Source: Botryllus schlosseri
Lineage: Eukaryota
NCBI GenBank assembly: GCA_051294905.1
Contig: CM119372.1
Location: forward strand, 23,994,001 to 24,058,000
DNA length: 64,000 bases
Direction of reading: 5' to 3'
The notes beneath the pieces were generated by a model that worked only from the letters and a program-made list of their open reading frames with translations, was not told where the DNA came from and did no database searches. The translations under genes and the position numbers were made by a program. Of the stretch, positions 2,065-43,376 are shown piece by piece. The first letter of the stretch is position 1. Each line of letters begins with the position of its first letter.

Positions 2065-3966
2065 AATATACATCGCCAGCATTGCCAACGAATTGGTTTA
2101 ATCGTGCACCTTTAATTTCCGTATTGTCTTCTCAGGAAAACATTCTTAGGTACGGAATATAATACTGCATAATAAGGTGCACGAAATTACCCTCTCGCTC
2201 AAATTACACCTCTGTGATACAATAATAATTCGTGCCTTATCACAATAGTGTTGATCTTAGCAATCAAGCTCGTTAATTCACAGTTGATCCTATTTCTGCT
2301 TCTTCTTATGCTCGCCATACGCAGAAATCGGCACGACGCAGGGTGACCACTGGACCGACCATGTATTGTTTAACAACAGAGTGAATGCGAAAGCTGCATT
2401 ATTAGCACAATAGTCACGTCTGAATGTGGTTATTTACTTTCGAACTCGCGTCTCACCACCAGAAATTGAATCCGAAGCCGTCATGCAAAATATTACTCCG
2501 TACAATTACTCTTGGCAGCAACATTCAGTTATATCATTCTCAGATGGTATATAGGCACTAGATTACGCTTCATATTTGTAAAATTCATGGCAAAGTGTAA
2601 CATGGTTCTCAGCTGATATGCATGTGATGATTCAATATACGCTGAATTTGCATTTTCGACAAAAATGGCAGCGTGATATGAAGCACTACTTTCGATAACG
2701 AAATTATCTTATGACTAGAGACCTAACAACGATATTTGATGACTGGTGACTAAGCTGCGTAGGTTATATGCATATGCTGCTTAAATATTTATATTTATAA
2801 TCGCATACATTGGCATATTATGTGCCTCTCGTGCATTGCGTTAGATATTTTACTAATCATTTGTTGACATGAAAGTACAGGCTATTTATGAATTATAATT
2901 ATCTAATGTAATTGCTATTGGAACATAACACTTTTTGGTCTAGATATTTTTCAGGGGTGACAGGTAGTTCGTACAGAGTTCTCATTTTGGTGACGTTGAA
3001 AGTTTGCCGTGGCATCAATTGTCTGACTAGTGTCGACGGGACTAGGATCGTGCCTGCTTTTGCTGTCCGGAGAAGTGATATATGTGCTATTGCCACGACG
3101 GAAATTGTTGTGTATACGTGTACAATACATATTGTACAGTTCTGGGACTTCAGTTGTTCAAGGAAATGAGATGTAGTTTCAACAGTAGAATCAGTTTGGT
3201 TAATTGCCGCGATGTACTGTGTTGGTGTGAATGTGAACTGCTGTGAACTTCACCCTAACGCCTAGACGCGAAGGCACTTCATCTGTTAATCACCACTTCC
3301 GTAATCAGGGACCATTCTCTAAAAGTATAAATAATCCTTATCATTTTACAACCAATTCCAAATTCGTTCCGCACGTAGGATTATCATATTTTGTGACTGA
3401 AATTCCGGATACTCTCTATAGCGTCTGCTAGCAGGTTTTAAAAAGAGGTATGAAACACATTTTTATCAATATGACGTCACACTGGCAATGGTTTTCATTT
3501 TTTCTAATGTATACATAGGTGAATTTTTGAACATAGGTCCCGAATTAACTGTGATATTATGTATAATTTGAGCGCTGGCGATTGCAAGGGTTGGTATCTT
3601 CATTTGGTCAGCAGACTTCGCAGGTCGGATGGTTGTCAGGCGCGCCGTATCCGGCACGCTGGATGTGCTCTACAGCCCTGCGATCGTGTTAGGTTGGTTC
3701 AGCTATGTGGTTGTGTGTTGTAACCAGGACTGATACAACACTTTCTCAGCGCCCTCCCGCCCCCTGAAACACAGTGGTATGGGACAGACGATATACTGAT
3801 TCTTCCATACTATACTGTATATGATATTTACATGTTATACCCTACTATATATATACGACACTAAACCGCGTGCAGCGAGAAGAAAAATTGCAAGTGGCAT
3901 AAATCTGCCCAAAATAAGATATTGTTCATGTTGATTTACGAAAAAAATTTTAAGCTCCCTTTAAGC

Positions 3967-4449
3967 CAAGGGTGGCCAACCTTTTCGGCCAAAGGGCCAT
4001 CCGCAATCGACGAACCATTGCGCGGACTACTAACCGCGCCATGCGCGAAAATTTTTCAAAGTGTATAGGTCAATAAATAGGTCAATAATATTGTTACTTG
4101 AGTATGTTGCGGGTCTGCTATATATCACTGGGCACAGTTTACAAGTACAGGACTATTCGGCACCTGGACATATCGATATCGAAGGCTTCGGTCAACATGC
4201 TTCAATCATTTTGTGGCTAGGTTTCATCGTCGACTTCATTGTAATGTACGAAGATCTACCAAAATGTTACTGGCCCAGTGATCTGCCAATGCGTCGGAAC
4301 TGATATTTTAGTCATCAGCACACCAAGTGTTTCGCCCAGACTAATTAAATTTTTGGTTAGCCTGGCAAGTTCACAATGTGGGCAATCCATTCTGTATAAT
4401 ATGACTAATTTCGAAAAGCACCTCGCGGGCCACGGGTTGGCCGCCCCTG
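3967..4449. mobile_element. hAT (Buster/Charlie-like) non-autonomous element
   Basis: TIRs CAAGGGTGGCCAACC / GGTTGGCCGCCCCTG; 8-bp flanks CTTTAAGC and CTTTAACC (7/8, nnnTAnnn). Confidence 0.8.
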
Positions 4450-5671
4450 CTTTAACCCGACAAAATTCCGGACATTTAAGCATATGTTCTCATTTCCTCC
4501 CGGACACAGTTTGAACAGCGAAAATCCGGAAATATCCGGAAGATGCGGACGTATGGCAACCCAAGTTCCTTGCCTCTACAAATTTTCGAAAATGATTGGC
4601 TGGAAGGATGCGGCCAACAGTGACAAAGCAAGTTGCCATATATCAAGACTTTGGATTTGCGGTAATATTTACCTTATGTGATGTCATACTAGAATCGTAA
4701 CATCAGCGGGCTGCATGGTATAGTTTTCCTCACTAAATAGTTCCTATTGGTCAATGATCACGTTCCTGATCAATCACCTAACTTCCAGTATTTCGAAATA
4801 TAGGGCTTTATATATTCCTTTTGAACGAATTTTCTCGACTAGACCATGCTCATGACTCACTGACCTCATCCGTAGGCCAATATTGCCGACGCGGTCTTTT
4901 AGCACAATTATGTGGTATGCGTAGGCTGTCAATTTGACTAATGCAGATCGATATGGACAAATGATATTCATTGATTCTATCGTTGTCTGTTGACTTACGT
5001 TTGTCATGCAATAACGTGCATTCGCTTCGATAATAAAGCGTGAAATGCCGAAGATATACGTCAACCATAGCCAACTCTGCGTTAAGAGCGAGCTCCTATT
5101 TTATGCAGGTTTGCCAGGGATTTGACTTCTGCTCATGCGCTATGTGTATGTTGTGCTTGTGCCACATGGGATTGCGTAAAGTTGTAGCAGGTGTTTTCAG
5201 TTAATATGCCGACAATGACATAAAGCGTATTTTCAGTTGCGACGCGAGCCCGTGTCTACTGCGAGTTGCTGTGTCGAATTCGTGTTATACATCAAACCAT
5301 ATATTAGCACAGTATTGGCTATTAGAACCACGATTAAGTATGGCGAAACCAATAAAGAACGGCATGATAGTTTTTGCCACTTGACTTAGAACTGCGTAAA
5401 GGATGCCTCAGTCTGGAGTTTGGGTACACTCTTCCGCGAATAGTATTATTCCTTGGTTTCGAGGCTTGTAAAAGATCTAATCGGGGATATAGTTCGTGAG
5501 CATGAGCATGAGGTGTCAGTGTCATGCTCTCACACTAGCAATCATGGTAAGCTGTTGACTGAGTGTTGTATAGTGACGGCAAGCGGTGCCATGATATTCT
5601 GTTACATGCCTCACTTTCACAAAACGACAGCAAATTAAGGCAGCAATAGATTATAGACCTATATTTAGGCG

Positions 5672-5770
5672 TAGGGTTACCATACGTCCTTTTTTCAATT
5701 TCGGTCAACAAACTTTTATGGTTTGATAAAAGAGTCTTTCTAATCCCGATTCCAAAATATGGTAACCCTA
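5672..5770. mobile_element. Minimal 99-bp copy of MITE family C
   Basis: 12-bp TIR TAGGGTTACCAT / ATGGTAACCCTA, same ends as 11998-12398; no TSD. Confidence 0.7.
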
Positions 5771-5839
5771 CCTATTTGAATAGGTAGGGTTACCACATAA
5801 ACGAGATGGGAGAAATACTTTCTCCCATCTCGTTTATGT
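5760..5839. repeat. Two abutting perfect hairpins
   Basis: TGGTAACCCTACCTATT-tg-AATAGGTAGGGTTACCA (17-bp stem), followed by a ~20-bp stem ATAAACGAGATGGGAGAAA-tac-TTTCTCCCATCTCGTTTAT. Confidence 0.9.
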
Positions 5840-5882
5840 ATTATTATCGTAACAAGCCAAGTGTTTATTACCTTTCAGATTT

Positions 5883-7013
5883 ATGATGATTAATCAGTTG
5901 TTCGGCAAAGATCGTGGATCTTTTAGAAGACCTCGGACGCGTAATAATACGAAGCCCAGAGCTCAAACAGCACCTTCGGAAAATAATCGACTATCGCCCA
6001 ACGTATCTAATAACGAGCCAAATAATGGACTAACCGGCCAGGTAGGGCCTGGAATATTAGCCAGATTCAGGAAACTGTTTAATTCGATTAGACGAGGGGA
6101 AGGCCGAAGGGAATTATTTGACTACACTCCTTCTCAAAATCCGGAGGAATTCTTGGAAAACCTGCGACAAATTACAGAAAACTCGGACGAAGATGAGTTC
6201 AATAGACTAGCTAGTTACGAGGTCACAACTACATCTCCGGAGTCCGAAATTGCTACTGGACACACTCGGTTCGTGTGCATATCCGATACGCATTCGACCC
6301 ACCGACGAATGAAAGTACCCGATGGGGATGTTCTGATTCACTGCGGAGATTTTACTGAAAGAGGTTTCATGAAAGAAGTTGTCGATTTCAATCGGTGGCT
6401 AGGTAAGTTGCCGCATAAACACAAGGTTGTGATAGCCGGAAATCACGAGATTTCTTTCGACAAGGCCATTATGGAAGGATTGCAAAGTGCTGATAATGTG
6501 CGCTTTCGCATGCACCGGAATATCCCGGAACATGTTTGGCGAGACTGGCAAACAGTATTGACGAATTGCACGTACCTCGAAGACAGCGAAACCGAAATCA
6601 ACGGGATTCGAATATACGGTTCGCCCTGGCAACCTAATTGCGGGAACTTAGCCTTCAATTTAAAGCGTGGTCAAGAGATATTAGATAAATGGAAGCGCAT
6701 TCCTAGCGGAATCGATATCCTATTGACTCATGGCCCACCGGCGGGTAGGCTGGATCGTGCGAACAGAGGCACCCGCGCTGGGTGTGTTGATCTTTTGAAC
6801 GAAGTGCAATTGCGTGTCAAGCCCAAGTATCATATATTTGGCCATATACACGACGGTTACGGTACCGACTGCGATGGACATACTACTTACATAAACTGTT
6901 CAGCTGTGGATGCATTCCGTAATCCGATCCGCGACGCGGTTGTGTTTGACTACCCTAACAAAGAATTGCGCCAACTTGGCGATGTACCGGATATCATTGT
7001 TACTGATGCATAA
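5883..7013 (+). CDS. MPPED1/2: Metallophosphoesterase domain-containing protein, MPPED1/MPPED2 family; single exon, 376 aa
   Basis: All five calcineurin-like motifs present: DTH, GDFT, GNHE, THGPP, FGHIH; family-typical GSPWQP and AGCVDLLNEVQLRVKPKYHIFGHIH. Confidence 0.92.
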   Translation: MMINQLFGKDRGSFRRPRTRNNTKPRAQTAPSENNRLSPNVSNNEPNNGLTGQVGPGILARFRKLFNSIRRGEGRRELFDYTPSQNPEEFLENLRQITENSDEDEFNRLASYEVTTTSPESEIATGHTRFVCISDTHSTHRRMKVPDGDVLIHCGDFTERGFMKEVVDFNRWLGKLPHKHKVVIAGNHEISFDKAIMEGLQSADNVRFRMHRNIPEHVWRDWQTVLTNCTYLEDSETEINGIRIYGSPWQPNCGNLAFNLKRGQEILDKWKRIPSGIDILLTHGPPAGRLDRANRGTRAGCVDLLNEVQLRVKPKYHIFGHIHDGYGTDCDGHTTYINCSAVDAFRNPIRDAVVFDYPNKELRQLGDVPDIIVTDA

Positions 7014-8320
7014 TCGGAAAGTGTCGTAGGTCTGTGTCATGGGAGTTGGTAAACGATTGCAATGCATAAGGTATAGTTGATTGTGACTGAATGCGCAGCG
7101 CAATGGCGCATTACGCAACATAACTATCGTTTTGCTTAGCAGCCGGAATATGAATTCGATACCATCCCATCCCACATATATTTGTCAACCTCTTTTCACG
7201 ATTTATCGCGGGCGATACTGCGTGGCTTGCTGAATAAGCGCTTCTATACGACTGTGGGCAATATCCCGCTGAGCGCTGACCAGTGACCATGCAGTGCTGC
7301 TGTGTGATCGCTTTGCTCCGATGCAGTATAGCTTCGTGAGCTTCGTGACAGTAATTTGTTAGGTTAGCTGGGCGTGATATATAGGCATACCATATACAGC
7401 AACCATGAGATTTGACCTGCATCGCGTGCCGTGTATAGGCCTACTACACGCACTTTTCTGATTATTTAGTACAGTTCATAGAACACTTCTCCACTCTTTC
7501 TGCATATGCCACTTCGTTTATTTATTAGCGTTATTACTTCGTTCTGACTTCACGTGAATATGAATGGGTCAAACCAATGAAGAAATCGTCTGTCCTCGTG
7601 TCTGAGATTTCGACTATTGTTTATTTGTAAAATGAAAACTTTCCTACCAATACACATGCCAATTAGCAAGTGGTCGTAATGTTTGCAATATTTGCATCAC
7701 AGACAACAAGGTTTCTTTGAATGACCATTGACCATAGGCCATCTACGTAAATGATGGGTCATAAACGATTTCACGTACTTGCTTTCATCGAGTATCCGGC
7801 CTTTTCCTAAAGATATAACTTGTACAAGAACTCATTTTCTGAAAATATATGGTCGATGCCGCGTGTCATCTCGCAGAATCGCTGTGACGTAAATCGACAA
7901 CTATATGGGATGGGTATATTAGGAGGAGCCTATACACATCCATTCAATTTACATCATAGATCATGTTTCAATGCCAGATCATTATGGAGGTAGAATGTTC
8001 CGGCCATTTCGCGGTTGTCATTTCGAGCCACGGTTTTACAGGTATACGTGGCAGCGCATATCGCGGCGTCGCACGCCAACCTATATAAGTGGCCAAAGTA
8101 TAGTCATTGCTGGTACTCAAGTACAAGTATAGAAGTAATGCCATAAATTAATAATCAAATGCAAGATTAATCTATTTAGAGAAGGCAGTGATATCTAGAA
8201 CTAGTTCAAGATACCCTGAGAGAAGGTGTAGCCAACATGTTTGAAACCAAGAGCTACTTCTTGGGTACTGATTAAAGCGAACGGCTACCAATTTCTCCCG
8301 CCGTTTACCTGTAGTCTCTC

Positions 8321-32700: not shown

Positions 32701-34017
32701 CTGTCTTTTCATTGTATCGCATTTTTTGTGGTGTATTGAACTGATAAAATTGCTAATAAACCAATGATGATGATGATGATGAAGGCCGGAAAAGTGCTTC
32801 AGTAGATTTGGTCGATGTGTCGCAATCTGTTGCATGCTTTTAGCAGTTGAGCACACTTTTGAAATTGCAATGTGTATTTTCACAAACGCAAAATGTCACC
32901 ACAAATAGGCACAATTTTCATGACTGTCAAACCCATAAGTGATTAAAACATATCTCAAAACTAGTTTCCACTTTCTATGATACAAGTGTAAAAAGTAAGT
33001 AGGTGGTTTTGCCTAAAAACTGTTGAGCACAAGTAAAAGTAGTCTATTAAACATAGTACACGTAGGCAAAGTTGTAATATTGCTGTAGAGTTAGTTTTCA
33101 ACACTACTTCATTTTACGAAGCCTGCAGAACCGAAGCATTGTACACCCAAGTTATTTCAGAAGGGTTGTAATGACTCGAGTCATGACTCCACTTGTACTC
33201 GAGTCATTGTGCAGGACTCGAACCAAGTCATATGACTCGAGATTAGGACAGCCAAGCCAGACATTTCATTGCAACTTCGAAAAATAGTAAAGCCACCACA
33301 TGATTGGTATTTTGTCTATCAGTCCTGATACTTGGAAAATAGGGCCAGAAACTGATGGGACTGAGGAAAGTTATGATATTATGAATGTGAGCCATTCTAT
33401 ATCACTATAGCATAGTTTGAAAAATGTGTTTGAATAGGATTGAACCCAAATTTGAACAGGTTTGAACCCAAAACTGAACAGCGAACACTATGACTTGGAC
33501 TTGACTTGGTGGTGAATTGAAAATGACTCGACTTGACTCAAGTCAAAACAATAGAAATGAGATTGATTGTGACTTGGTTACAACCCTGGAGTGTTATGTT
33601 TTACACTTTCCCACACTACATTCCGGTATCGACTGATTGTTGAATGCTTGTGAAGACGCACTCTTCTGCATTCTTACGACTTTGGAAGTAGCAGCTTTGT
33701 AGTGTCCTAGTCACATTCCAGAGCATTAGACATGAGTACTGTGCTGTCGATGAATACGGTATGGCAACAGGCAGTCTAACTAAGTATTCCGGCGCTCACC
33801 TACCATCAAGTTTTCGCACGTGACAGCATGTACCATCAATTTTCTCTGTCGCACGGCCGTTTTTCACGTCACAAGTCACTGCATCTTCTGACAATTCTGC
33901 CACAGCCTCTACAATGTAATTTTGACCTTCCCTTTTTGACGATGGCGCTTCCCTCACAACAGTTTTCAGAATGCAAGGCATTTTGCTTTGCACGGCGCAT
34001 GTCTTATTCCGAAGCAT
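29747..34017 (-). CDS. RLIG1: RNA 5'-phosphate/3'-OH ligase 1 (C12orf29) orthologue, 344 aa, 5 exons
   Basis: Exons 34017-33804, 32120-32014, 31956-31821, 31765-31562, 30120-29747; phases consistent (1035 nt). Motifs [66 protein letters not shown] match human C12orf29 as I recall it. Confidence 0.92.
32258..32780 (+). mobile_element. LINE family 2 tail interrupted by a SINE
   Basis: ATTACCGGACCACGAC...TATCGATCTC [SINE] GCTTCC...CGCCTAGGCCAAGGTGGGTGTC...(ATG)n tail. Confidence 0.8.
32290..32547 (+). mobile_element. tRNA-derived SINE, family 2
   Basis: A box TAGTGTAATGG, B box GGTTCGATTCC, body GGGTCATACCAAAGAC..., (CT)n tail. Confidence 0.85.
33161..33588 (-). mobile_element. MITE family E, inverted copy in RLIG1 intron 1
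   Basis: AGGGTTGTAATGACTCGAGTC ... GTGACTTGGTTACAACCCTG. Confidence 0.8.
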
Positions 34018-34818: not shown

Positions 34819-36225
34819 TCAAGATATAACACAGCAGCTTTTGCGACCAGATGCTTGCACGTTCGATAACTCCACGTTGGACGTGCAGCTTTCGTGAACA
34901 TCCGGGTCGTTTTTAGGATCATAGTCGTCCGCTATTCTTTGGAAAAGCTCCAAAATGTTGTGGTTTATTTTGCTTGAAGTCTCAAAAACAACGGCGTCAA
35001 CGGTCGCTCCGTAGTCTTCGCAGTCGTGCTGGTCGACGGCTCGCGGAAATTCTCCGGTCGTAATCAAGTCCGACTTTGTACCGCACAGGTAAACTTTGCA
35101 AAGCGCTTCCACCTCGTGCAGTTCATTGACCCAAAATCTGGCTTTCTCGAAGCTCTTCTTATCCGTTAAGTCGTAGCAGACCACAGCAGCTCGGGCGTCT
35201 CGGTAGTAAATCCGACTCATGGCCTGGTATTTTTCCGACCCGGCCGTGTCCCATATTCCTAATGTAATATACCTGGACGAAACAAGAGAAACCAACGATC
35301 AATGACTGTACGTTTGAAGAAATCTGTCAGCAATAACGGCATAGGCTACCATGACTGCTTGCAGAAAAGACGCACTCAAGTATAGAGCAGATTAATTTTA
35401 GGAGGCAGCTACATCAAAAATACATCGTTAGAGTCTAGGCGCAATGTTCTGATATTTGTGACGAATTGTAACGAGATTGCTGGAACTTTGATGAAAAAAT
35501 TTGCTTAATCAACGTAAGGAGTACGCTGTATATTGAAGGACAAAAATTGTAGGGACGTAATAGGAACATTGCAACGATATGTACATAGTGTTTCGTTTCT
35601 GTCGGGGTCGGGTGACACCATTCCCTTCAACCCTATCAAAAACAATATCCAAGAAAACCATACCAGTAACTGGTCCTAATCTAAGAAATGTCATTCATTC
35701 ATGCGAAATAGCCTACAATTACTTAATACATGTGTATCTGACATAATTATTCAGCCAATATCAAATTAAGATACCGGTAGCCTCAAATGTCAGCCATTAT
35801 AACGGAAGTAGAACAAAATTCACACATCGAGAAGTCGATAAATTTAACCAGGCTGCTATTCATGGGGACAAACTCGCTATGCACCATTTGAGACATCAGG
35901 GCACACTTAGTTTTTCCTGCAGATTTCCATGGGGCTACATGGAAAAACATTACTTAAGAACCCACACACCATCTCAGCACTCAGCAGATTGTCTGTCTTT
36001 CTTTCATAAACCCAAAGAACTTCTGAGTCCTCGGTTTGGATGCAAGGAAAAATTCACATACCTATTTTTAACATGAAATTTCTTTGCTCCGAATGCGGCC
36101 CCTATAGTACTTTGATATGGAGTTCCATTGAATCGATTGTGCAATAGCCTTTCAACCAAACTCGTCTTTCCACTGTTGTCTTTACCTAGAAGTACCACTT
36201 TGCAATCCACAGTATCCCTGGACAT
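34819..36225 (-). CDS. RAB24: Ras-related protein Rab-24, 205 aa, 2 exons
   Basis: Exons 36225-36062 and 35272-34819, phase 2. GKDNSGKT, YQSTIGAAF, WDTAGSEKYQAMSRIYYR, CGTKSDL, C-terminal CCVIS; the S in DTAGS and the TKSD box are Rab24 hallmarks. Confidence 0.93.
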
Positions 36226-37147
36226 GCTGTGAGGTAATTGAGTACCGTTTACAACTTTTCTGTACTACTCTATGCTTTGACTACATCTTAATTTAAAGCT
36301 GGATCGAAAAATACAATGAAAAATGGTAAACATTACACTGGTGCAAATGCTTGCAACCCTACAGCTAAACATATTGCAATTTTCCTGAGCATACAGTGGA
36401 TAACATCAAACTCTTTAATCAAGAGCAGAGAATTGCGTATAAATGATACGGATAAAAATGCTATACAATGCTGCAAGAAATATATGTTAGATATTTTACT
36501 CTTTCCTATCTTTTCATTGTATCCCAATCATGTTGTGTTTTGAACATATGATTTCATAATGAACTGAAATGAACCCCAAACATGTGCATGCATGCTGAGT
36601 AGTCTACTTCTGATGGCGCTATTACTGCATTGTAATACAATCCACACAGACAATAAAATGTATGAGGCTTCGGAAAATAGTCTTTACAGTATAACTTGCA
36701 ACCCTATTTTACTGAAACGCACGGTAATCCTCTCTTATATTTGGCTTATCCTAATCAAATCACCAATTGGCTTATTCATTACATTTCACAATTGAAGGTC
36801 ATAACGTGTCAAATTGTCTTCACGAGTCTAAAGGAACTAAGTGTTCTTGACAGGAAGTATCATATAACATAATAATATAAATGTGCTTTAATGCATTCAC
36901 CATTACATGTTATTAAACTGCGTGCAGCATGTGACGGCAAAGCTAAAACATGAGTCACCATGGAGTAACTGAACAATGTGACCTATTTTCATATTTGTCA
37001 ATCTCATAAGCCAGATTTCTATACCGGTACTACTATTGCTACTCTGCAGGATAACCAATTCAATAAGCCTATTTTCGTATAAACATTCCGAATTAAGGTA
37101 TATTATAATGGTTGCTCTTCAAAAATTTAGAATACAATCATTTAAAG

Positions 37148-38330
37148 CAGTGGTTCCCAACGTGGGCGATATCGCCCCCCAGGGGGCGATTTGGCGGTCT
37201 AGGGGGGCGAAAATAACGAAGGGGGCGATAGGGGGGCGAAAATGGAAGAAGGGGGCGATGGGGGGCGAAAACAACGAAGGGGGCGATAGGGGGTCGATGG
37301 CGCGTTAAAACTGCTATATTGGAGTCGGAACTGTAACTACCGCACCCCAAACCCCCCAATTGGGAGGGGGGCCCGAAATCGAAGGAAGCCCAAATTTATT
37401 TCGTGAATTAACATGAATGATAGAGTAATTTTTTAGAAAATCATGCGACTTTTTCAAAATTTTCGCGCTGTGCGCGATTTAATATCTTTATGTATCTTGA
37501 TGTTGGGGTCCCCGTCATCCAACAAAAATACGCATGATTTATGGAAATGGGAGACTTCGGCGTCACCCATTACTGCGCCCTGACGCACCAAGACACATGA
37601 AGTTGGAGGCCATGTAACATGCGACTCCAAGAAGTGTGCCAGAACGATCCGCAGCGAGAAGACCTTGTCCGAAAGGAATGCCCTTGTGCTAACCGAAAAC
37701 TTCGATATGTATACATACATATATGTTTAGTTGTCTATAGGCGCCTCAATGGCTGGCGTCGAATGTTCCTGTCCTGGCGAACTTAACCCTACAGGACAAA
37801 TTCCATCCCGCAAGGAAAATATTATTTGACAGTAAAGAAATACCAATATAAAATCATGTGCGTCTTTTAGTTTGGTACGCTTTGACGATTTCCATATCTT
37901 CTGATATAGCAGATATAGGAGGTCACGAAACAGCATCATGTAAAGAAGTCAATATAACAACGATTCCGCCGAGGATGTTTAATTATTATTTAGGGGTACT
38001 ACCTTTTCCAACATACCACATCGACCATATTGACCGATTCAAACATGAATTATATAAATTTGTTGCGCTCCGCTCGTTCAGGCGAAATACAGGGACTCAC
38101 CAAACAGTACATGAAATAGGGTATAGCTGATATGTAGCGACAAAAAGCCCACTGGCTGAGGGGGGTCTGGGGTTTGGTTTATCACCCTATGGGGCCAAAG
38201 ACCAACGTTTTTTTTTTGGGGGGGGGGGGGGCTGACGAATACTGTTTTTCGGTTCCCAATATCTGGGGGGCGATGATCGGTGTGGAGCTTCAAAAGGGGG
38301 CGATGAGTCGAAAAAGGTTGGGAACCACTG
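37148..38330. mobile_element. 1183-bp non-autonomous hAT (Buster-like) element
   Basis: TIR CAGTGGTTCCCAAC / GTTGGGAACCACTG; perfect 8-bp TSD ATTTAAAG; GGGGCGA subterminal arrays. Confidence 0.93.
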
Positions 38331-38560
38331 ATTTAAAGCATGAAAATCATTGAAATATTAGGTAAAAGCTAAGACATTACGGTATAATATGTAATGCATA
38401 TATATGGAATTCATCAATTTTTTTGCACTTGAATTTCACGATTCTTACTTTTACTATGGCCGGCTAGTTTCACTCTATCTTAGTCATACTACAATTCATG
38501 CGGCATATGGATATCAATCCGACACAAACATCAAACAACAGAAATAGGTGTAAAAACATG

Positions 38561-39840
38561 TCAGTTGGCATCCGAGCCGCAACAACGTCTTCTGCTACTA
38601 TCGGCGGGAACAGAAACTTCTGACAGTTCAATTATTGGACGACTATCGAACATGCCCGGACTGTCTGCTCTAAAGTCCGACGTCAAGCTGAAATCGTCGG
38701 CGATACGCTGGAATAATTCCGTCACATTTTCGCCAGTTTTGCTCGAGGTCAAGAAACAATCGCCGTTGAACATTTTCAAATCTTGTATAGAAACCTTGAG
38801 AGCTTGGGACTCACATTGTACCAAGTCCATTTTCGTCCCGCAAATATACACCTGGCAAGACTTTTCGTGGACTTGTAATTCCTTAATCCAATATTCGGCT
38901 TCGTGGAACGATTTGGAGTCTGTTACATCGCAGCAAATGATTGCAGCCTTAGCATCACGGTAATACAATCGCACGATGCTCCGAAAACGTTCCTCCCCCA
39001 TTGTATCCCAAATATGGAGCAATGCCGTTCTAAGACAGAAAAAAGTCAAGTGCTATAAACAGGTACACACGCAGTGCAGACTCAACCTCCCAATTTAAAA
39101 AATAGGAATCAAAATTCACCATATAGTTGCATAATGAATGATGTGATGAATGTCATCAAGGAATAGATGATAGGTAGGCCTACTTATAACCAAGAAGCGG
39201 ACTTAGTACTGAAATTCACTTCATCTACCTGCAGCTTTTAAATGGTAGATTACTAGTTTAGGACGACTTAAAACAGTACAGGTAAAATTGAAGACTCTGA
39301 TCTGCATCTGCCTGATTGTCGGATTTTGTCAGACTTGAAAGCAAGGAATACGGCAAGTGATTTGCAAAATTGCATTTCGCTTCAGAATTCATACATAGCA
39401 GCGGTTCCTACACTTTTTGGCAAACGCATCACTTGCCGTACAATCATAAAGCACTGAAAAGAGCACAGGGGCATGGGTAATATGCAATAAAACTATGGTA
39501 TTATAAGCCAAGCATCTCAGGTTAATTTGGGTCAAATTGAGTCTTCATGAGCAGACGAAGCCACTTTCACATGGTATTCGACTAAACCACTAATACACAG
39601 TCAAATTTCGATAATGATTGCAAGTCTAAATTCGACAGTTTGCATCCTAAATAAAATCACAACTCACCCTTTATCAGTCTGCAAAGTCTTGGTGGCAAAG
39701 ACAGCCCCAAAACTGTGCGAGAGACCGGGTTGGAAAACTCCTTTCAGCAAGCGACAAAGAAGAGTCGACTTACCTCCTGATTTTGCACCAAGTAAAATCA
39801 CTTTGCACACATTCTTACCAACTACAGTACGTCGCTTCAT
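38561..39840 (-). CDS. Divergent RAB24-like GTPase B, 213 aa, 2 exons
   Basis: Exon 1 39840-39668 (58 codons, missing from the ORF track): MKRRTVVGKNVCKVILLGAKSGGKSTLL...SHSFGAVFATK. Exon 2 39029-38561: WDTMGEERF, GTKMDL, LTSSK, RRRCCGSDAN. Same phase-2 intron as RAB24. Confidence 0.88.
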
Positions 39841-42030
39841 TGATGACTCAATATCTACAGTCTACACGTTGAGGATAATAATCAAAAATCTACTACAGGC
39901 TCAGGCATCACCAATAGGCAGTACAGTGCCGGTTGCATGTATTTTGTTGGAATGACACAAAAGTACTTTCTCTTTGACAAAACACTGCATTTATATGATT
40001 CATTGTGATGCCACTTCAAATCTATATTTGTAAATGTGAATCACCAGTTGCTACAGCACATTGCATATCATAGCATAGCCTGATCGAAGCTAAATGTGAC
40101 TAATATCACATCAAGAAGCATAAGAAAAAGCAAATGAGTGAATTCACCTGCTCACGTTTATTGCTATTTACGGTATCAGGTCAACTAAGGAAGGAATTCT
40201 GGTAGCAGTTTAGGCGCATCATACACATGATGACAAATATTAGAAGATGGCTGAGGATAGCTGACGTAAAATGAGTGGATGCAACATACCGATGTCTTTT
40301 CCATCGTAGAATCCGAGGATTTAAATGACTCCATCAGCAACGAAGTGACGTTCAGACTTCAGGAAGCACACCAAAAGCATATTTTACGATATTAGCAATA
40401 CGTAACTGTATTCAACTGGAATTCAACAACAATACAAAATATCGCATAATGAAATGTCGTGTGATGAGATAATATTTGCATGGATGAGAAATATTGATAC
40501 CGGTAGTGAAAGAAATACGATTCACTAAAATGAAGAGGTTCAAAAAGGACATCAGGATTGATATTGAGATGCTAAACAGGATATTTATCCAATTACAACT
40601 GAAAATGGCAAGAAAGAATAATATAATTATGAATTGTCAATACTCTCACTGCATATTTCTCCGAAGTTTGGCTGCTACATTCATCGTCACAGAATCAACT
40701 TCAATCAGATTATTCAATCATGACAGCCAGCCATGACAGCATCATGACAGCACTTTTCTTTGTCCTTGCTGCTAGGCAAGCATAGCTTCAAAATACTAGT
40801 GCTTGGGCCCAGGTTCTCTATATCAAGTTGAAATGGTATCACAACCAATTTATTAACGGCAAGGCTAGCATTCGTTATGTTTAAGATGACGTAATTGGCA
40901 GTAACAAAATTTTAGAGGAATGCGATACAAGAAAGCCAATGGACGGAAGCAGACTGTACAGAACCATCAGTAGTTAATATGAAGAAATCGGTAGTAAGAT
41001 TTCATTGCTACTAACAGAGACAGCTTTACGAAAATATGCTAGTAAAACCACAAAAAATATCAGAATAATAGTAGTTCGCAATGAATTTGTAGGCTACGTA
41101 CGATTGATATATAGAGTGCCTTGAATGCATAGGATGAATGAAAAATATGAAGTCTGAGTTTGCAATATATGTTTACATGAGGGCTAGAGTCTGTCAATTT
41201 CTGCACAGGTAATTACAAAAAAAAAATGGTAATTCATGGTAAAAATAAACAAGAAAATTAAGCGAGGACACGATGAGTGATGACCCTCACATGTATCTCA
41301 TTACAGGCTACCGGTCGCTAGCCTACATAGGCTATTATGTCGCAAGTACAAACAAAAAAATGCAACCTGGAAAATTTCATGGTGAATGTGGAGACACAAG
41401 CCTTATTGCTGACACACAAAAAAGGCAACAGGGTGAAGACCTATCCAACCTCAGATCCTCAAAATGAATAAACGAAGCAGAGGCAGGTAGTACCATAAAT
41501 ACAGTGGTCAGGGTGATGTGACAAACTGTTCAAGTTGTGGTAGAGTCTGTTGCAATCTGCTCAAAGATAAGCAAAAGACCTAGGCCTAATAAAATCGCAG
41601 AAAGCAATGGTTTCTTGTGTAGGTAGTACATCACTAATCACTAGTCGTTGGAAGTTGTCGGAGGTAAGAAAAATCGAGCTGGAGTAGAATTATGAGTCAA
41701 GATGTATGGTGAAATTTCATTGCATTGAGTAGACCTTGTGGTCAAAGTACATTCACGTTAGCTTCTCACTACCGACAATTGGTGGATACTAGGGGATACT
41801 AAGAATTACTACCCTAGTGAGCTAATCATGCATTGCATGCAGTATGCAAAAGTTCAAAAAATACAATCATGAACAAGAGCTAATTACGGAAAACAGATCT
41901 TGCTGAGGACATAATAATCAACTTGTGTTACATAAGTAAAAACTACATGACGGTGCTGGAATTATGCTAGATATTACATAAAAAGACTTGCTAGTTATGA
42001 CCATGAAACAATTATATCAATATATCATAC

Positions 42031-43164
42031 CTATGATGAACTACAACATGTTGGTCCTGTATCATTGTTATTAGCATGTTGCTTTGAACTGTTGCTGTGA
42101 TACAAAGATCTGGAGGAGCCTGTCGAGTTAATTTCCCCGCTATATATTTGTTCAAAGTCTTCTGCGATTTGTTGAAAAAGTGGAAAAACATTATAATTTG
42201 CCTTGCTTGAAGTTTCAATTGAAGACGCCTTGAAGATAGTCAATTCCTCCGACTGGATTGCACGGCTTCTCAACTTATCCCAAATAAGGTCAGCTTTAGT
42301 TCCGCAAACATATATTTTACAGTCCTTTTCGGCACTACGAACCGCCTTTATCCAATATTCCATCCTTTTGAAACTGGCCCGCTCTGTTAGATCACAGCAA
42401 ATAATGGCGGCCTGTGCATTACGGTAATAGAGACTCGCAAGAGAAAGGTAGCGTTCTTGTCCGGCGGTATCCCAAATTTGCAAAGAAACCAATCTGAAAT
42501 ATATCATAAAGTCTCTATCACTGATTATGATCATTGACAATTGTGCAAGTTTCCGAAATAAAGCAACTATGAAATTGAAGTAAACCTGGTCTCATAGCAG
42601 TATAGCCTATCAGTCATTCACTAAATTTCCATAATTTGCTGTAGGCTACCATAACATTTTGAAGATACAAAATTGAATTAGTGTAGTTTACCGCTTAGGC
42701 TAACGATTTAATACACACCGCATCCTAGAATATTAGTAAAAACTGAAAACAAATTACTTTTGAAAGAGAAAATAAAGACTGAACATGGGTAAATTTGCTC
42801 TAATGCAAACATAAGAATCTCAGATCGAAATACGCTTTGAGGCTATATCTATTGGATTAGGCTAGCGAGCGGTCGCCGCCCGGCAATATAAATAAGAGTG
42901 CATTTTTATTTCCAATGCATCAACTTAAATTTTCTACGACATGGGTGACATGTTATTGTTACTTACTACCGGTATATATGTTACTTACCCGCGTTCCGTG
43001 TCAAGCATTTTTGCGCCAAAAGCTGCGCCTATCGTTGGTTTGGATTTTACATCGAACGAGTCGTGAAGAAATCTTTCAAGAAGGCAGGTTTTGCCTGAAC
43101 CTGCATCTCCAAGCATCACAACTTTACATGGCCTTGAATTTCGAACCTTTCTGGCATAATCCAT
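42031..43164 (-). CDS. RAB24-like GTPase A, 212 aa, 2 exons
   Basis: Exons 43164-42989 and 42493-42031, phase 2. GDAGSGKT, KPTIGAAF, WDTAGQERY, GTKADL, ETSSK, C-terminal TCCSSS. Confidence 0.9.
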
Positions 43165-43376
43165 GATTGAATGATCACTTAGCAGGAAAGCCAAAATGCA
43201 GAGGCACGGCAGGTCAGCTGGTTTGCATTCATTCGAGAATCATGACTAATACCAAGTGTATCCGCGAGTTGGCGTTAGCGGTAGTCGCATGACGCACGTA
43301 CTCGTACTGTTTCAGCAGCGTGTACTCAAAGTACACGCTGGTTTCAGTATTCGATACCTTATTAATTGTATTTACA

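Follow-up and report, generated by a model that had tools for sequence, protein, structure and literature searches.

A tandem RAB24 cluster in Botryllus schlosseri and its probable origin by lineage-specific expansion in stolidobranch ascidians

We analyzed a window of 64,000 nucleotides from Botryllus schlosseri (NCBI GenBank assembly GCA_051294905.1, contig CM119372.1, positions 23,994,001 to 24,058,000 of the forward strand); all positions below are those of this window. Positions 34819–43164 hold three co-oriented two-exon Rab genes on the minus strand, here called RAB24, B, and A, and in the direction of transcription the order is A, B, RAB24, RLIG1. A first-pass annotation of the same DNA had described this arrangement with a common phase-2 intron, G3 motifs that differ among RAB24 (DTAGSE), B (DTMGEE), and A (DTAGQE), and an origin by local duplication of RAB24. 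Spliced gene models and alignment bear out the structures, the coordinates, and the motifs, and the duplication is supported by tandem order, a shared derived intron, conserved synteny, and Rab24 as the nearest family. We therefore consider it probable that the locus is a lineage-specific tandem RAB24 expansion in stolidobranch ascidians. The features are as follows.

34819..35272, minus strand: RAB24 exon 2, with DTAGSE, TKSD, ETSSK, the end CCVIS, and the stop codon; matches Pfam Ras, with 63% identity to Styela clava Rab24 and 55–65% to vertebrate Rab24.
36062..36225, minus strand: RAB24 exon 1, with the ATG, P-loop GKDNSGKT, switch I TIGAAF, and a phase-2 GT donor.
38561..39029, minus strand: B exon 2, with DTMGEE, TKMD, LTSSK, the end CCGSDAN, and the stop codon; RNA contig depth 18–21.
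39668..39840, minus strand: B coding exon 1, with the ATG, P-loop GAKSGGKS, and switch I SFGAVF; junction 39029/39668 seen in reads of run X24 and contigs of run X3.
40290..40417, minus strand: alternative exon upstream of B, spliced to B exon 2 with B exon 1 bypassed (GT..AG joint 39029/40290).
40416..42030, minus strand: 3' untranslated region (UTR) of A, about 1.6 kb, with an AATAAA/ATTAAA-type signal at 40854; from a contig of run X2.
42031..42493, minus strand: A exon 2, with DTAGQE, TKAD, ETSSK, the end CCSSS, and the stop codon; 62% identity to the S. clava "Rab-24-like" protein P0002.
42989..43164, minus strand: A exon 1, with the ATG, P-loop GDAGSGKT, and switch I TIGAAF.
37149..38330, no strand assigned: hAT-like non-autonomous transposon between B and RAB24, with terminal inverted repeat CAGTGGTTCCCAAC and 8-bp target duplication ATTTAAAG.
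33796..34017, minus strand: first exon of RLIG1 (RNA ligase 1), Pfam PF17720, E 8e-18.

The predicted products of RAB24, B, and A are 205, 213, and 212 amino acids long, and the RAB24, A, and B proteins are 40–45% identical in pairwise comparison. Each spliced coding sequence has a length divisible by 3 and a single stop, and the introns (789 nt in RAB24, 638 nt in B, 495 nt in A) are all GT..AG, all phase 2, and lie in one common alignment column, 7 residues ahead of the Trp in WDT. Exon 2 alone is sufficient for a match to Pfam Ras (PF00071) in all three genes (E 4e-27, 5e-23, and 1e-24). The motifs of Rab/Ras small GTPases, G1 (GxxxxGK[ST]), G3 (DxxG), G4 ([NT]KxD), and G5 (SxK), occur in RAB24, A, and B, as well as in a fourth member, B2, which lies on a different contig of the same genome; within the window, tblastn found no further copy. 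B had been suggested to be pseudo-like, but for nucleotide binding this is contradicted by its G1, DxxG, TKxD, and SSK motifs, which are all intact. The double Cys reported at the C-terminus is indeed present in all three proteins, although it is near-terminal rather than terminal, with 3 residues following it in RAB24, 5 in B, and 3 in A.

The gene here called RAB24 is a true RAB24 ortholog, because its exon 2 matches Rab24 proteins across animals: 92% against one Logan fragment, 63% against the S. clava "Rab-24-like" protein P0138, and 55–65% against vertebrate, hemichordate, echinoderm, and cnidarian Rab24. It shares DTAGSE, TKxD, ETSSK, and the CCxxx end with Rab24 (human RAB24, UniProt Q969Q5; group II Rabs of Klopper et al., 2012). 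In our main tree (maximum likelihood, ML; 54 rows, LG+C20) it falls inside both the stolidobranch Rab24 clade (100/99) and the tunicate Rab24 clade (98/93). Orthology to Rab24 is found for this gene only; A and B form a separate clade (97/92).

Gene structure provides the strongest evidence for the origin of A and B. Introns were placed by exact protein-to-genome mapping onto alignment columns, and the Rab24 genes of Hydractinia, Glandiceps, S. purpuratus, and Oryzias have 6–7 common introns at columns/phases 47/0, 71/0, 97/1, 120/0, 153/1, 170/1, and 204/1, of which Clavelina Rab24 retains four. Nine stolidobranch genes, in contrast, each have a single phase-2 intron at an equivalent codon, absent from canonical metazoan and Clavelina Rab24. 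This is the column 63 intron in the window RAB24, A, and B, in B2, and in S. clava A and S. clava Rab24, a position unused by canonical Rab24; for the three genes of a third species (X, Y, and Rab24) the intron was placed at the equivalent codon by inspection. The canonical seven-intron structure is thus found in no stolidobranch member, the true ortholog included, and the one-intron structure of all of them points to common descent within the lineage rather than counting as evidence against family membership. A and B also share the motif AAIICCD and a 4-residue deletion before G5, relative to Rab24, which argues that both descend from one duplicate.

Synteny extends the same pattern. In the S. 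clava genome an A ortholog precedes Rab24 in the same orientation, at a distance of 2.9 kb and with no B in between. For the third species, a 15-kb genomic Logan contig (L019, SRR10746997) contains X, Y, and Rab24 at 2697–7318, followed by RLIG1, so that the linkage of RAB24 to RLIG1 is conserved between the window and this species. X and Y (the latter being P0260) are both A-type, with DTAGQE and NKxD, and their introns are only 67–222 nt long; X has an insert of about 13 residues directly after the intron. The two are sisters in the tree (99/96), which suggests that the third-species triplet arose by its own independent duplication of A. Clavelina has a single, solitary Rab24. Its "Rab-24-like" protein P0121 was considered as a B-type gene and rejected, being the product of this solitary multi-exon Rab24 ortholog. 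In the window, about 800 nt separate the RAB24 stop from the start of RLIG1, which follows downstream on the same strand.

Similarity searches place A and B nearest to Rab24. The search with A exon 2 returned three close relatives only, P0001 (79%), the S. clava "Rab-24-like" P0002 (62%), and P0003 (57%), after which scores drop steeply to Rab5-like matches of about 40%. For B exon 2 no close relative was returned, and the best matches (45–50%) are ordinary Rab24 proteins; the two best Logan matches among them, P0122 and P0123 (49–50%), were rejected as B orthologs, as they have DTAGSE and TKKD and lie among ordinary animal Rab24. When an A-family profile was run against 1.84 billion representatives, A-type proteins came out on top, with one added (P0260), and the best single-domain matches below them were Rab24, Trichoplax Rab24 included; no other A-like family appeared among the 150 best. 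Proteins of 3–4 domains that also ranked high were considered as fused tandem models and rejected as unrelated, Rab1/35-like concatenations whose scores are additive. Full-length phmmer medians for the A family are 134–175 bits against stolidobranch Rab24, 121–149 against other Rab24, and 98–116 against Rab5-type proteins; the corresponding values for B are about 144, 142, and 102.

The comparison with Rab5, Rab21, and Rab22 deserves attention because these proteins share DTAGQE and NKxD with A orthologs, as well as the switch I motif TIGAAF. They also provide the best matches of solved structure: the 60 best matches shown by a PDB sequence search ranked Rab5/31/22 only, with no Rab24 or Rab20 entry, and an ESM Atlas feature search gave generic Ras clusters only. 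However, for both A and B the scores of Rab5-type proteins are about 40 bits below those of Rab24, and the G5 and pre-G4 motifs differ, ETSAK and (A/V)GNK in Rab5, Rab21, and Rab22 vs. ETSSK and CG(T/N)K in the Rab24 type. These motifs are ETSSK and CGTK in A, LTSSK and CGTK in B and B2, and TSAK and GNK in Rab5-type proteins. Together, A and B share with Rab24 the motifs CG(T/N)KxDL, (E/L)TSSK, and LFQxIAxD(F/Y) and a double Cys with trailing residues. They differ from it in other respects: A has the canonical catalytic Gln and, in most species, NKxD, whereas switch II of B reads Met-Gly-Glu, its switch I Thr is replaced by Ser, and its CC is followed by five residues; both A and B are without four residues ahead of G5.

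The main tree separates Rab5/21 from all other sequences at 100/99. The grouping of A and B with Rab5/21, named in advance as a finding that would overturn a Rab24 origin, is therefore not observed, yet the protein tree alone does not put A and B inside metazoan Rab24 either. Their clade (97/92), in which B and B2 together are sister to all A genes, is attached, beside other long branches, to the base of the Rab24 family, which is unresolved. One such branch, P0267, was considered as an A/B relative and rejected, since it is Trichoplax Rab24. Approximately unbiased (AU) tests did not reject trees in which A/B and stolidobranch Rab24 form one clade (p 0.118 and p 0.19), nor one in which B arises within the window-A lineage (p 0.27). 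The basal position of A/B is probably long-branch attraction of fast-evolving paralogs, and the tree by itself is no proof of their origin. A well-supported Rab-like clade from protist-type transcriptomes (P0129, P0130, P0132, and P0134) combines DTGGEE at switch II with NKxD and lacks C-terminal cysteines; it shares only the switch II Glu with B and appears otherwise unrelated to it.

Several observations weigh against an origin within the stolidobranch lineage. When long unknown branches were left out, a canonical Rab24 clade (98/96) excluded A and B, and the free ML tree, if taken at face value, would imply an older origin for them. The trees were built without named Rab20, Rab22, Rab17, and RabX1 sequences, the stolidobranch affinity of the Logan-contig species comes from the Rab24 tree alone, and dS is saturated in all between-species pairs. 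For B, the searches gave no ortholog in any other species. One could read A and B as an old paralog clade, the sister group of metazoan or even all eukaryotic Rab24 and comparable to Rab20 or to an unnamed group II Rab, that survived only in stolidobranchs and is a neighbor of RAB24 by chance. The canonical Gln and mostly NKxD of A would then be those of an unmodified ancestor, and one ancient metazoan duplicate of Rab24, Rab20, has been reported (Klopper et al., 2012, PMC3425129). We regard this as improbable. It needs the loss of A/B in every other sampled lineage and the independent gain of an intron with the same position and phase as that of the neighboring stolidobranch Rab24. It also sits poorly with the higher scores of A against stolidobranch Rab24 than against other Rab24, with the pull of other fast-evolving true Rab24s (Trichoplax) to the base, with AU tests that leave an in-lineage origin unrejected, and with the lack of any other A-like family among the 150 best of the representatives.

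Rab20 itself has Arg at the switch II position, and no sequence with Arg there occurs among the 150 best A-family profile hits. Like A and B, Rab20 is a Rab24-derived paralog, which indicates that the family has duplicated and diverged before. It is ancient and widespread, whereas A and B are apparently confined to stolidobranchs, share their intron with the local Rab24, and still adjoin RAB24. The lineage-specific intron, the adjacency to Rab24, and the higher stolidobranch Rab24 scores indirectly disfavor a Rab20 identity for A and B.

With the expansion of RAB24 within stolidobranchs as the preferred explanation, A would be a conserved product of it. The catalytic position is Gln in 6/6 A-type genes. 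The G4 motif is NKxD in 4/6 of them (S. clava, P0003, X, and Y) and TKxD in window A and its closest relative, P0001. The TKxD box attributed to the triplet is present in all three window genes, but it does not characterize the A subfamily. In the comparison of this genome with S. clava, nonsynonymous divergence (dN) is 0.32–0.36 for A vs. 0.25–0.27 for Rab24, which suggests that A is constrained almost as strongly as Rab24; synonymous divergence (dS) is saturated between species. A is kept by purifying selection. Contigs of runs X1 and X2, from two studies, lack the A intron (42494–42988) precisely as predicted, and the mRNA spans about 43210 to 40416 with a 1.6-kb 3' UTR; an X2 contig of 2311 nt covers 40416–42493 and 42989–43210. 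An undescribed subfamily had been raised as a possibility for these paralogs, and for A it has held up: A is a conserved subfamily, and our literature search found no paper linking Rab24 to tunicates or describing the A/B paralogs. The NCBI pipeline name of the S. clava A ortholog is "Rab-24-like," and what is known is therefore the Rab24 family and this label, while what is new is a lineage-specific member or small subfamily.

B presents a different picture. Its closest relative is B2, an intact gene at C3:2288326-2289255 (L004:1009-1938) on another chromosome-scale contig of the assembly (495.5 Mb, 219 contigs), with 80–83% amino acid identity to B. B2 has the same exon structure, the same phase-2 intron at a reduced length of 318 nt, DTMGEE, TKMD, and CCGSDAH, and it keeps Thr in switch I. 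The duplicated segment shared by B and B2 is only 1.3–1.6 kb long, with 81–84% DNA identity, and dN/dS between the two is 0.41–0.51 at a dS of about 0.2. RNA contigs differ from B by 6 nonsynonymous and 4 synonymous variants, with all nonsynonymous variants after G4 or in the hypervariable tail. Given the dN/dS and these variants, B is under relaxed but apparently non-neutral constraint. In RNA-like runs at most 0.14 of the words of B2 were found. DNA-type runs contained only 0.26–0.43 of its words, so the B2 locus is either strongly polymorphic or not fixed. In other species the searches gave no B ortholog, although the protein collection searched also missed this genome's own proteins, which makes this weak evidence.

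Transcription of B is split between two forms. The coding junction (39029/39668) is supported by 2 raw bulk RNA-seq reads of X24 and by X3 contigs, which carry a synonymous variant, and A and B, whose lack of expression had been proposed as grounds for dismissing them, are thus both transcribed and spliced at the predicted junctions. An alternative GT..AG joint (39029/40290) is at least as abundant as the coding junction (depth 21 in X2, depth 16 in X3, and 2 reads in X24), and its upstream exon, 40290–40417, lies directly against the end of the contig for the A 3' UTR. The part of the alternative RNA ahead of the Met of DTMGEE contains an in-frame stop and lacks an ATG, so this RNA cannot encode the P-loop; it is probably a product of read-through from A to B. 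The assembled contigs, which cannot prove a single molecule, suggest operon-like or read-through transcription of the whole A-B-RAB24 cluster.

On the RAB24 side, a B contig (contigs at about 36300–39029) reaches about 836 nt beyond the empty site of the transposon, towards the start of RAB24. The assembly carries the transposon, which is hAT-like and about 1.18 kb long, but the haplotypes of three RNA-type runs do not, and in these runs contigs join 37139 directly to 38331. Its ends occur in transcripts at very high depth, which suggests that the family is abundant and transcribed. We had considered a spliced-leader gene at 38300–38331, where depth is very high and many loose ends occur, and rejected it, as this is the end of the hAT-like transposon with its terminal inverted repeats and 8-bp target duplication.

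These data leave some room for the view that B is a duplicate in decay, without protein function, as B2 perhaps is too, in which case the triplet would be a functional pair plus a transcribed relic. The dN/dS of B and B2 would fit this, and their coding identity barely exceeds that of flanking and intron DNA (81–84%). The commonest junction in 2/3 runs leaves out the P-loop exon and gives an RNA that could encode no GTPase, nonsynonymous variants outnumber synonymous ones (6 vs. 4), no B ortholog was found elsewhere, and B2 is not detectably present in the RNA runs. Yet after a dS of about 0.2 the frames of B and B2 are still open, their splice sites are retained, and their G3, G4, and G5 motifs are identical; a rough hand Z-test on their values (about 3) puts dN/dS apparently below 1, the coding junction is seen in two independent runs, and the nonsynonymous variants are confined to the region after G4 and the hypervariable tail. 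We consider decay possible but unlikely. From the sequence and RNA evidence together, B is described here as young or fast-evolving, with relaxed constraint and an isoform that is largely non-productive; it is either a young neofunctionalizing copy or a slowly decaying one.

The simplest history, in view of the single phase-2 intron common to all members, is intron loss and gain in stolidobranchs followed by duplication in place. An ancestral stolidobranch RAB24 would have lost all seven canonical introns and gained one new phase-2 intron, and tandem duplication of this one-intron gene would have placed the A lineage upstream of RAB24. B may have come from the A/B stem or from A and would later have been copied to another chromosome as B2. 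In A, the catalytic Gln would have been restored in all species and NKxD in the majority, while CG(T/N)K, ETSSK, and LFQxIAxD were kept.

The three genes differ at the catalytic position of switch II. Rab24 is characterized by a residue other than Gln there (Ser in most animals), and we find Ser in the window RAB24, Gln in all A-type genes, and Glu in B and B2, with Met for the preceding Ala. Because of its Gln and mostly NKxD on Rab24-type features, A is predicted to cycle normally, as a Rab with a Rab24 scaffold that responds to GTPase-activating proteins (GAPs) and hydrolyzes GTP conventionally. Ras Q61E hydrolyzes GTP, so the Glu in B need not be inactivating. RAB24 remains a typical Rab24 (Ser, TKxD) and by analogy is expected to hydrolyze GTP poorly; it carries the residues that accompany deficient GTPase in mammalian Rab24, which is described, as far as PMC12847187 relates the work of Erdman et al. 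(2000), as GTPase-deficient (low intrinsic activity), with poor prenylation and weak binding of GDP dissociation inhibitor.

It has been proposed that local duplication produced switches with graded kinetics, and RAB24, A, and B could in principle act as slow, normal, and altered hydrolyzers on one autophagy or endosome pathway. The three different residues at the catalytic position, the Gln conserved in every A-type gene, the reported deficiency of mammalian Rab24, the common orientation of the genes, and contigs with transcription from A into B are all compatible with this. However, even true Rab24 orthologs do not all have Ser at this position: the residue is Ala in Oryzias, Cys in Megalopta, Thr in Halyomorpha, and Asp in Trichoplax. 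In addition, B is under relaxed constraint. We hold a graded series to be doubtful. Slightly less doubtful, though still tentative, is that A represents a conserved, undescribed Rab24-derived subfamily in which both atypical residues have reverted (Ser to Gln in switch II and, in most species, Thr to Asn in G4) and which is physically and transcriptionally linked to RAB24, the two forming a "revertant" pair of a GTPase-deficient and a cycling Rab on one effector scaffold, with B as a third, newly evolving switch state.

Rab24 is among the least understood of the ancient Rabs, and its lack of the catalytic Gln and its TKxD box have no known purpose. If true, a revertant pair could show what the GTPase deficiency of Rab24 is for, and a conserved paralog with both residues restored, standing beside the unmodified gene, would allow the two to be compared naturally in hydrolysis, GAP sensitivity, prenylation, and autophagy function. 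Apart from this, the cluster as interpreted here is an ordinary lineage-specific Rab expansion, as in many animal groups. The locus is also a clean example in which gene structure and synteny resolve the origin of paralogs that long branches blur in protein trees.

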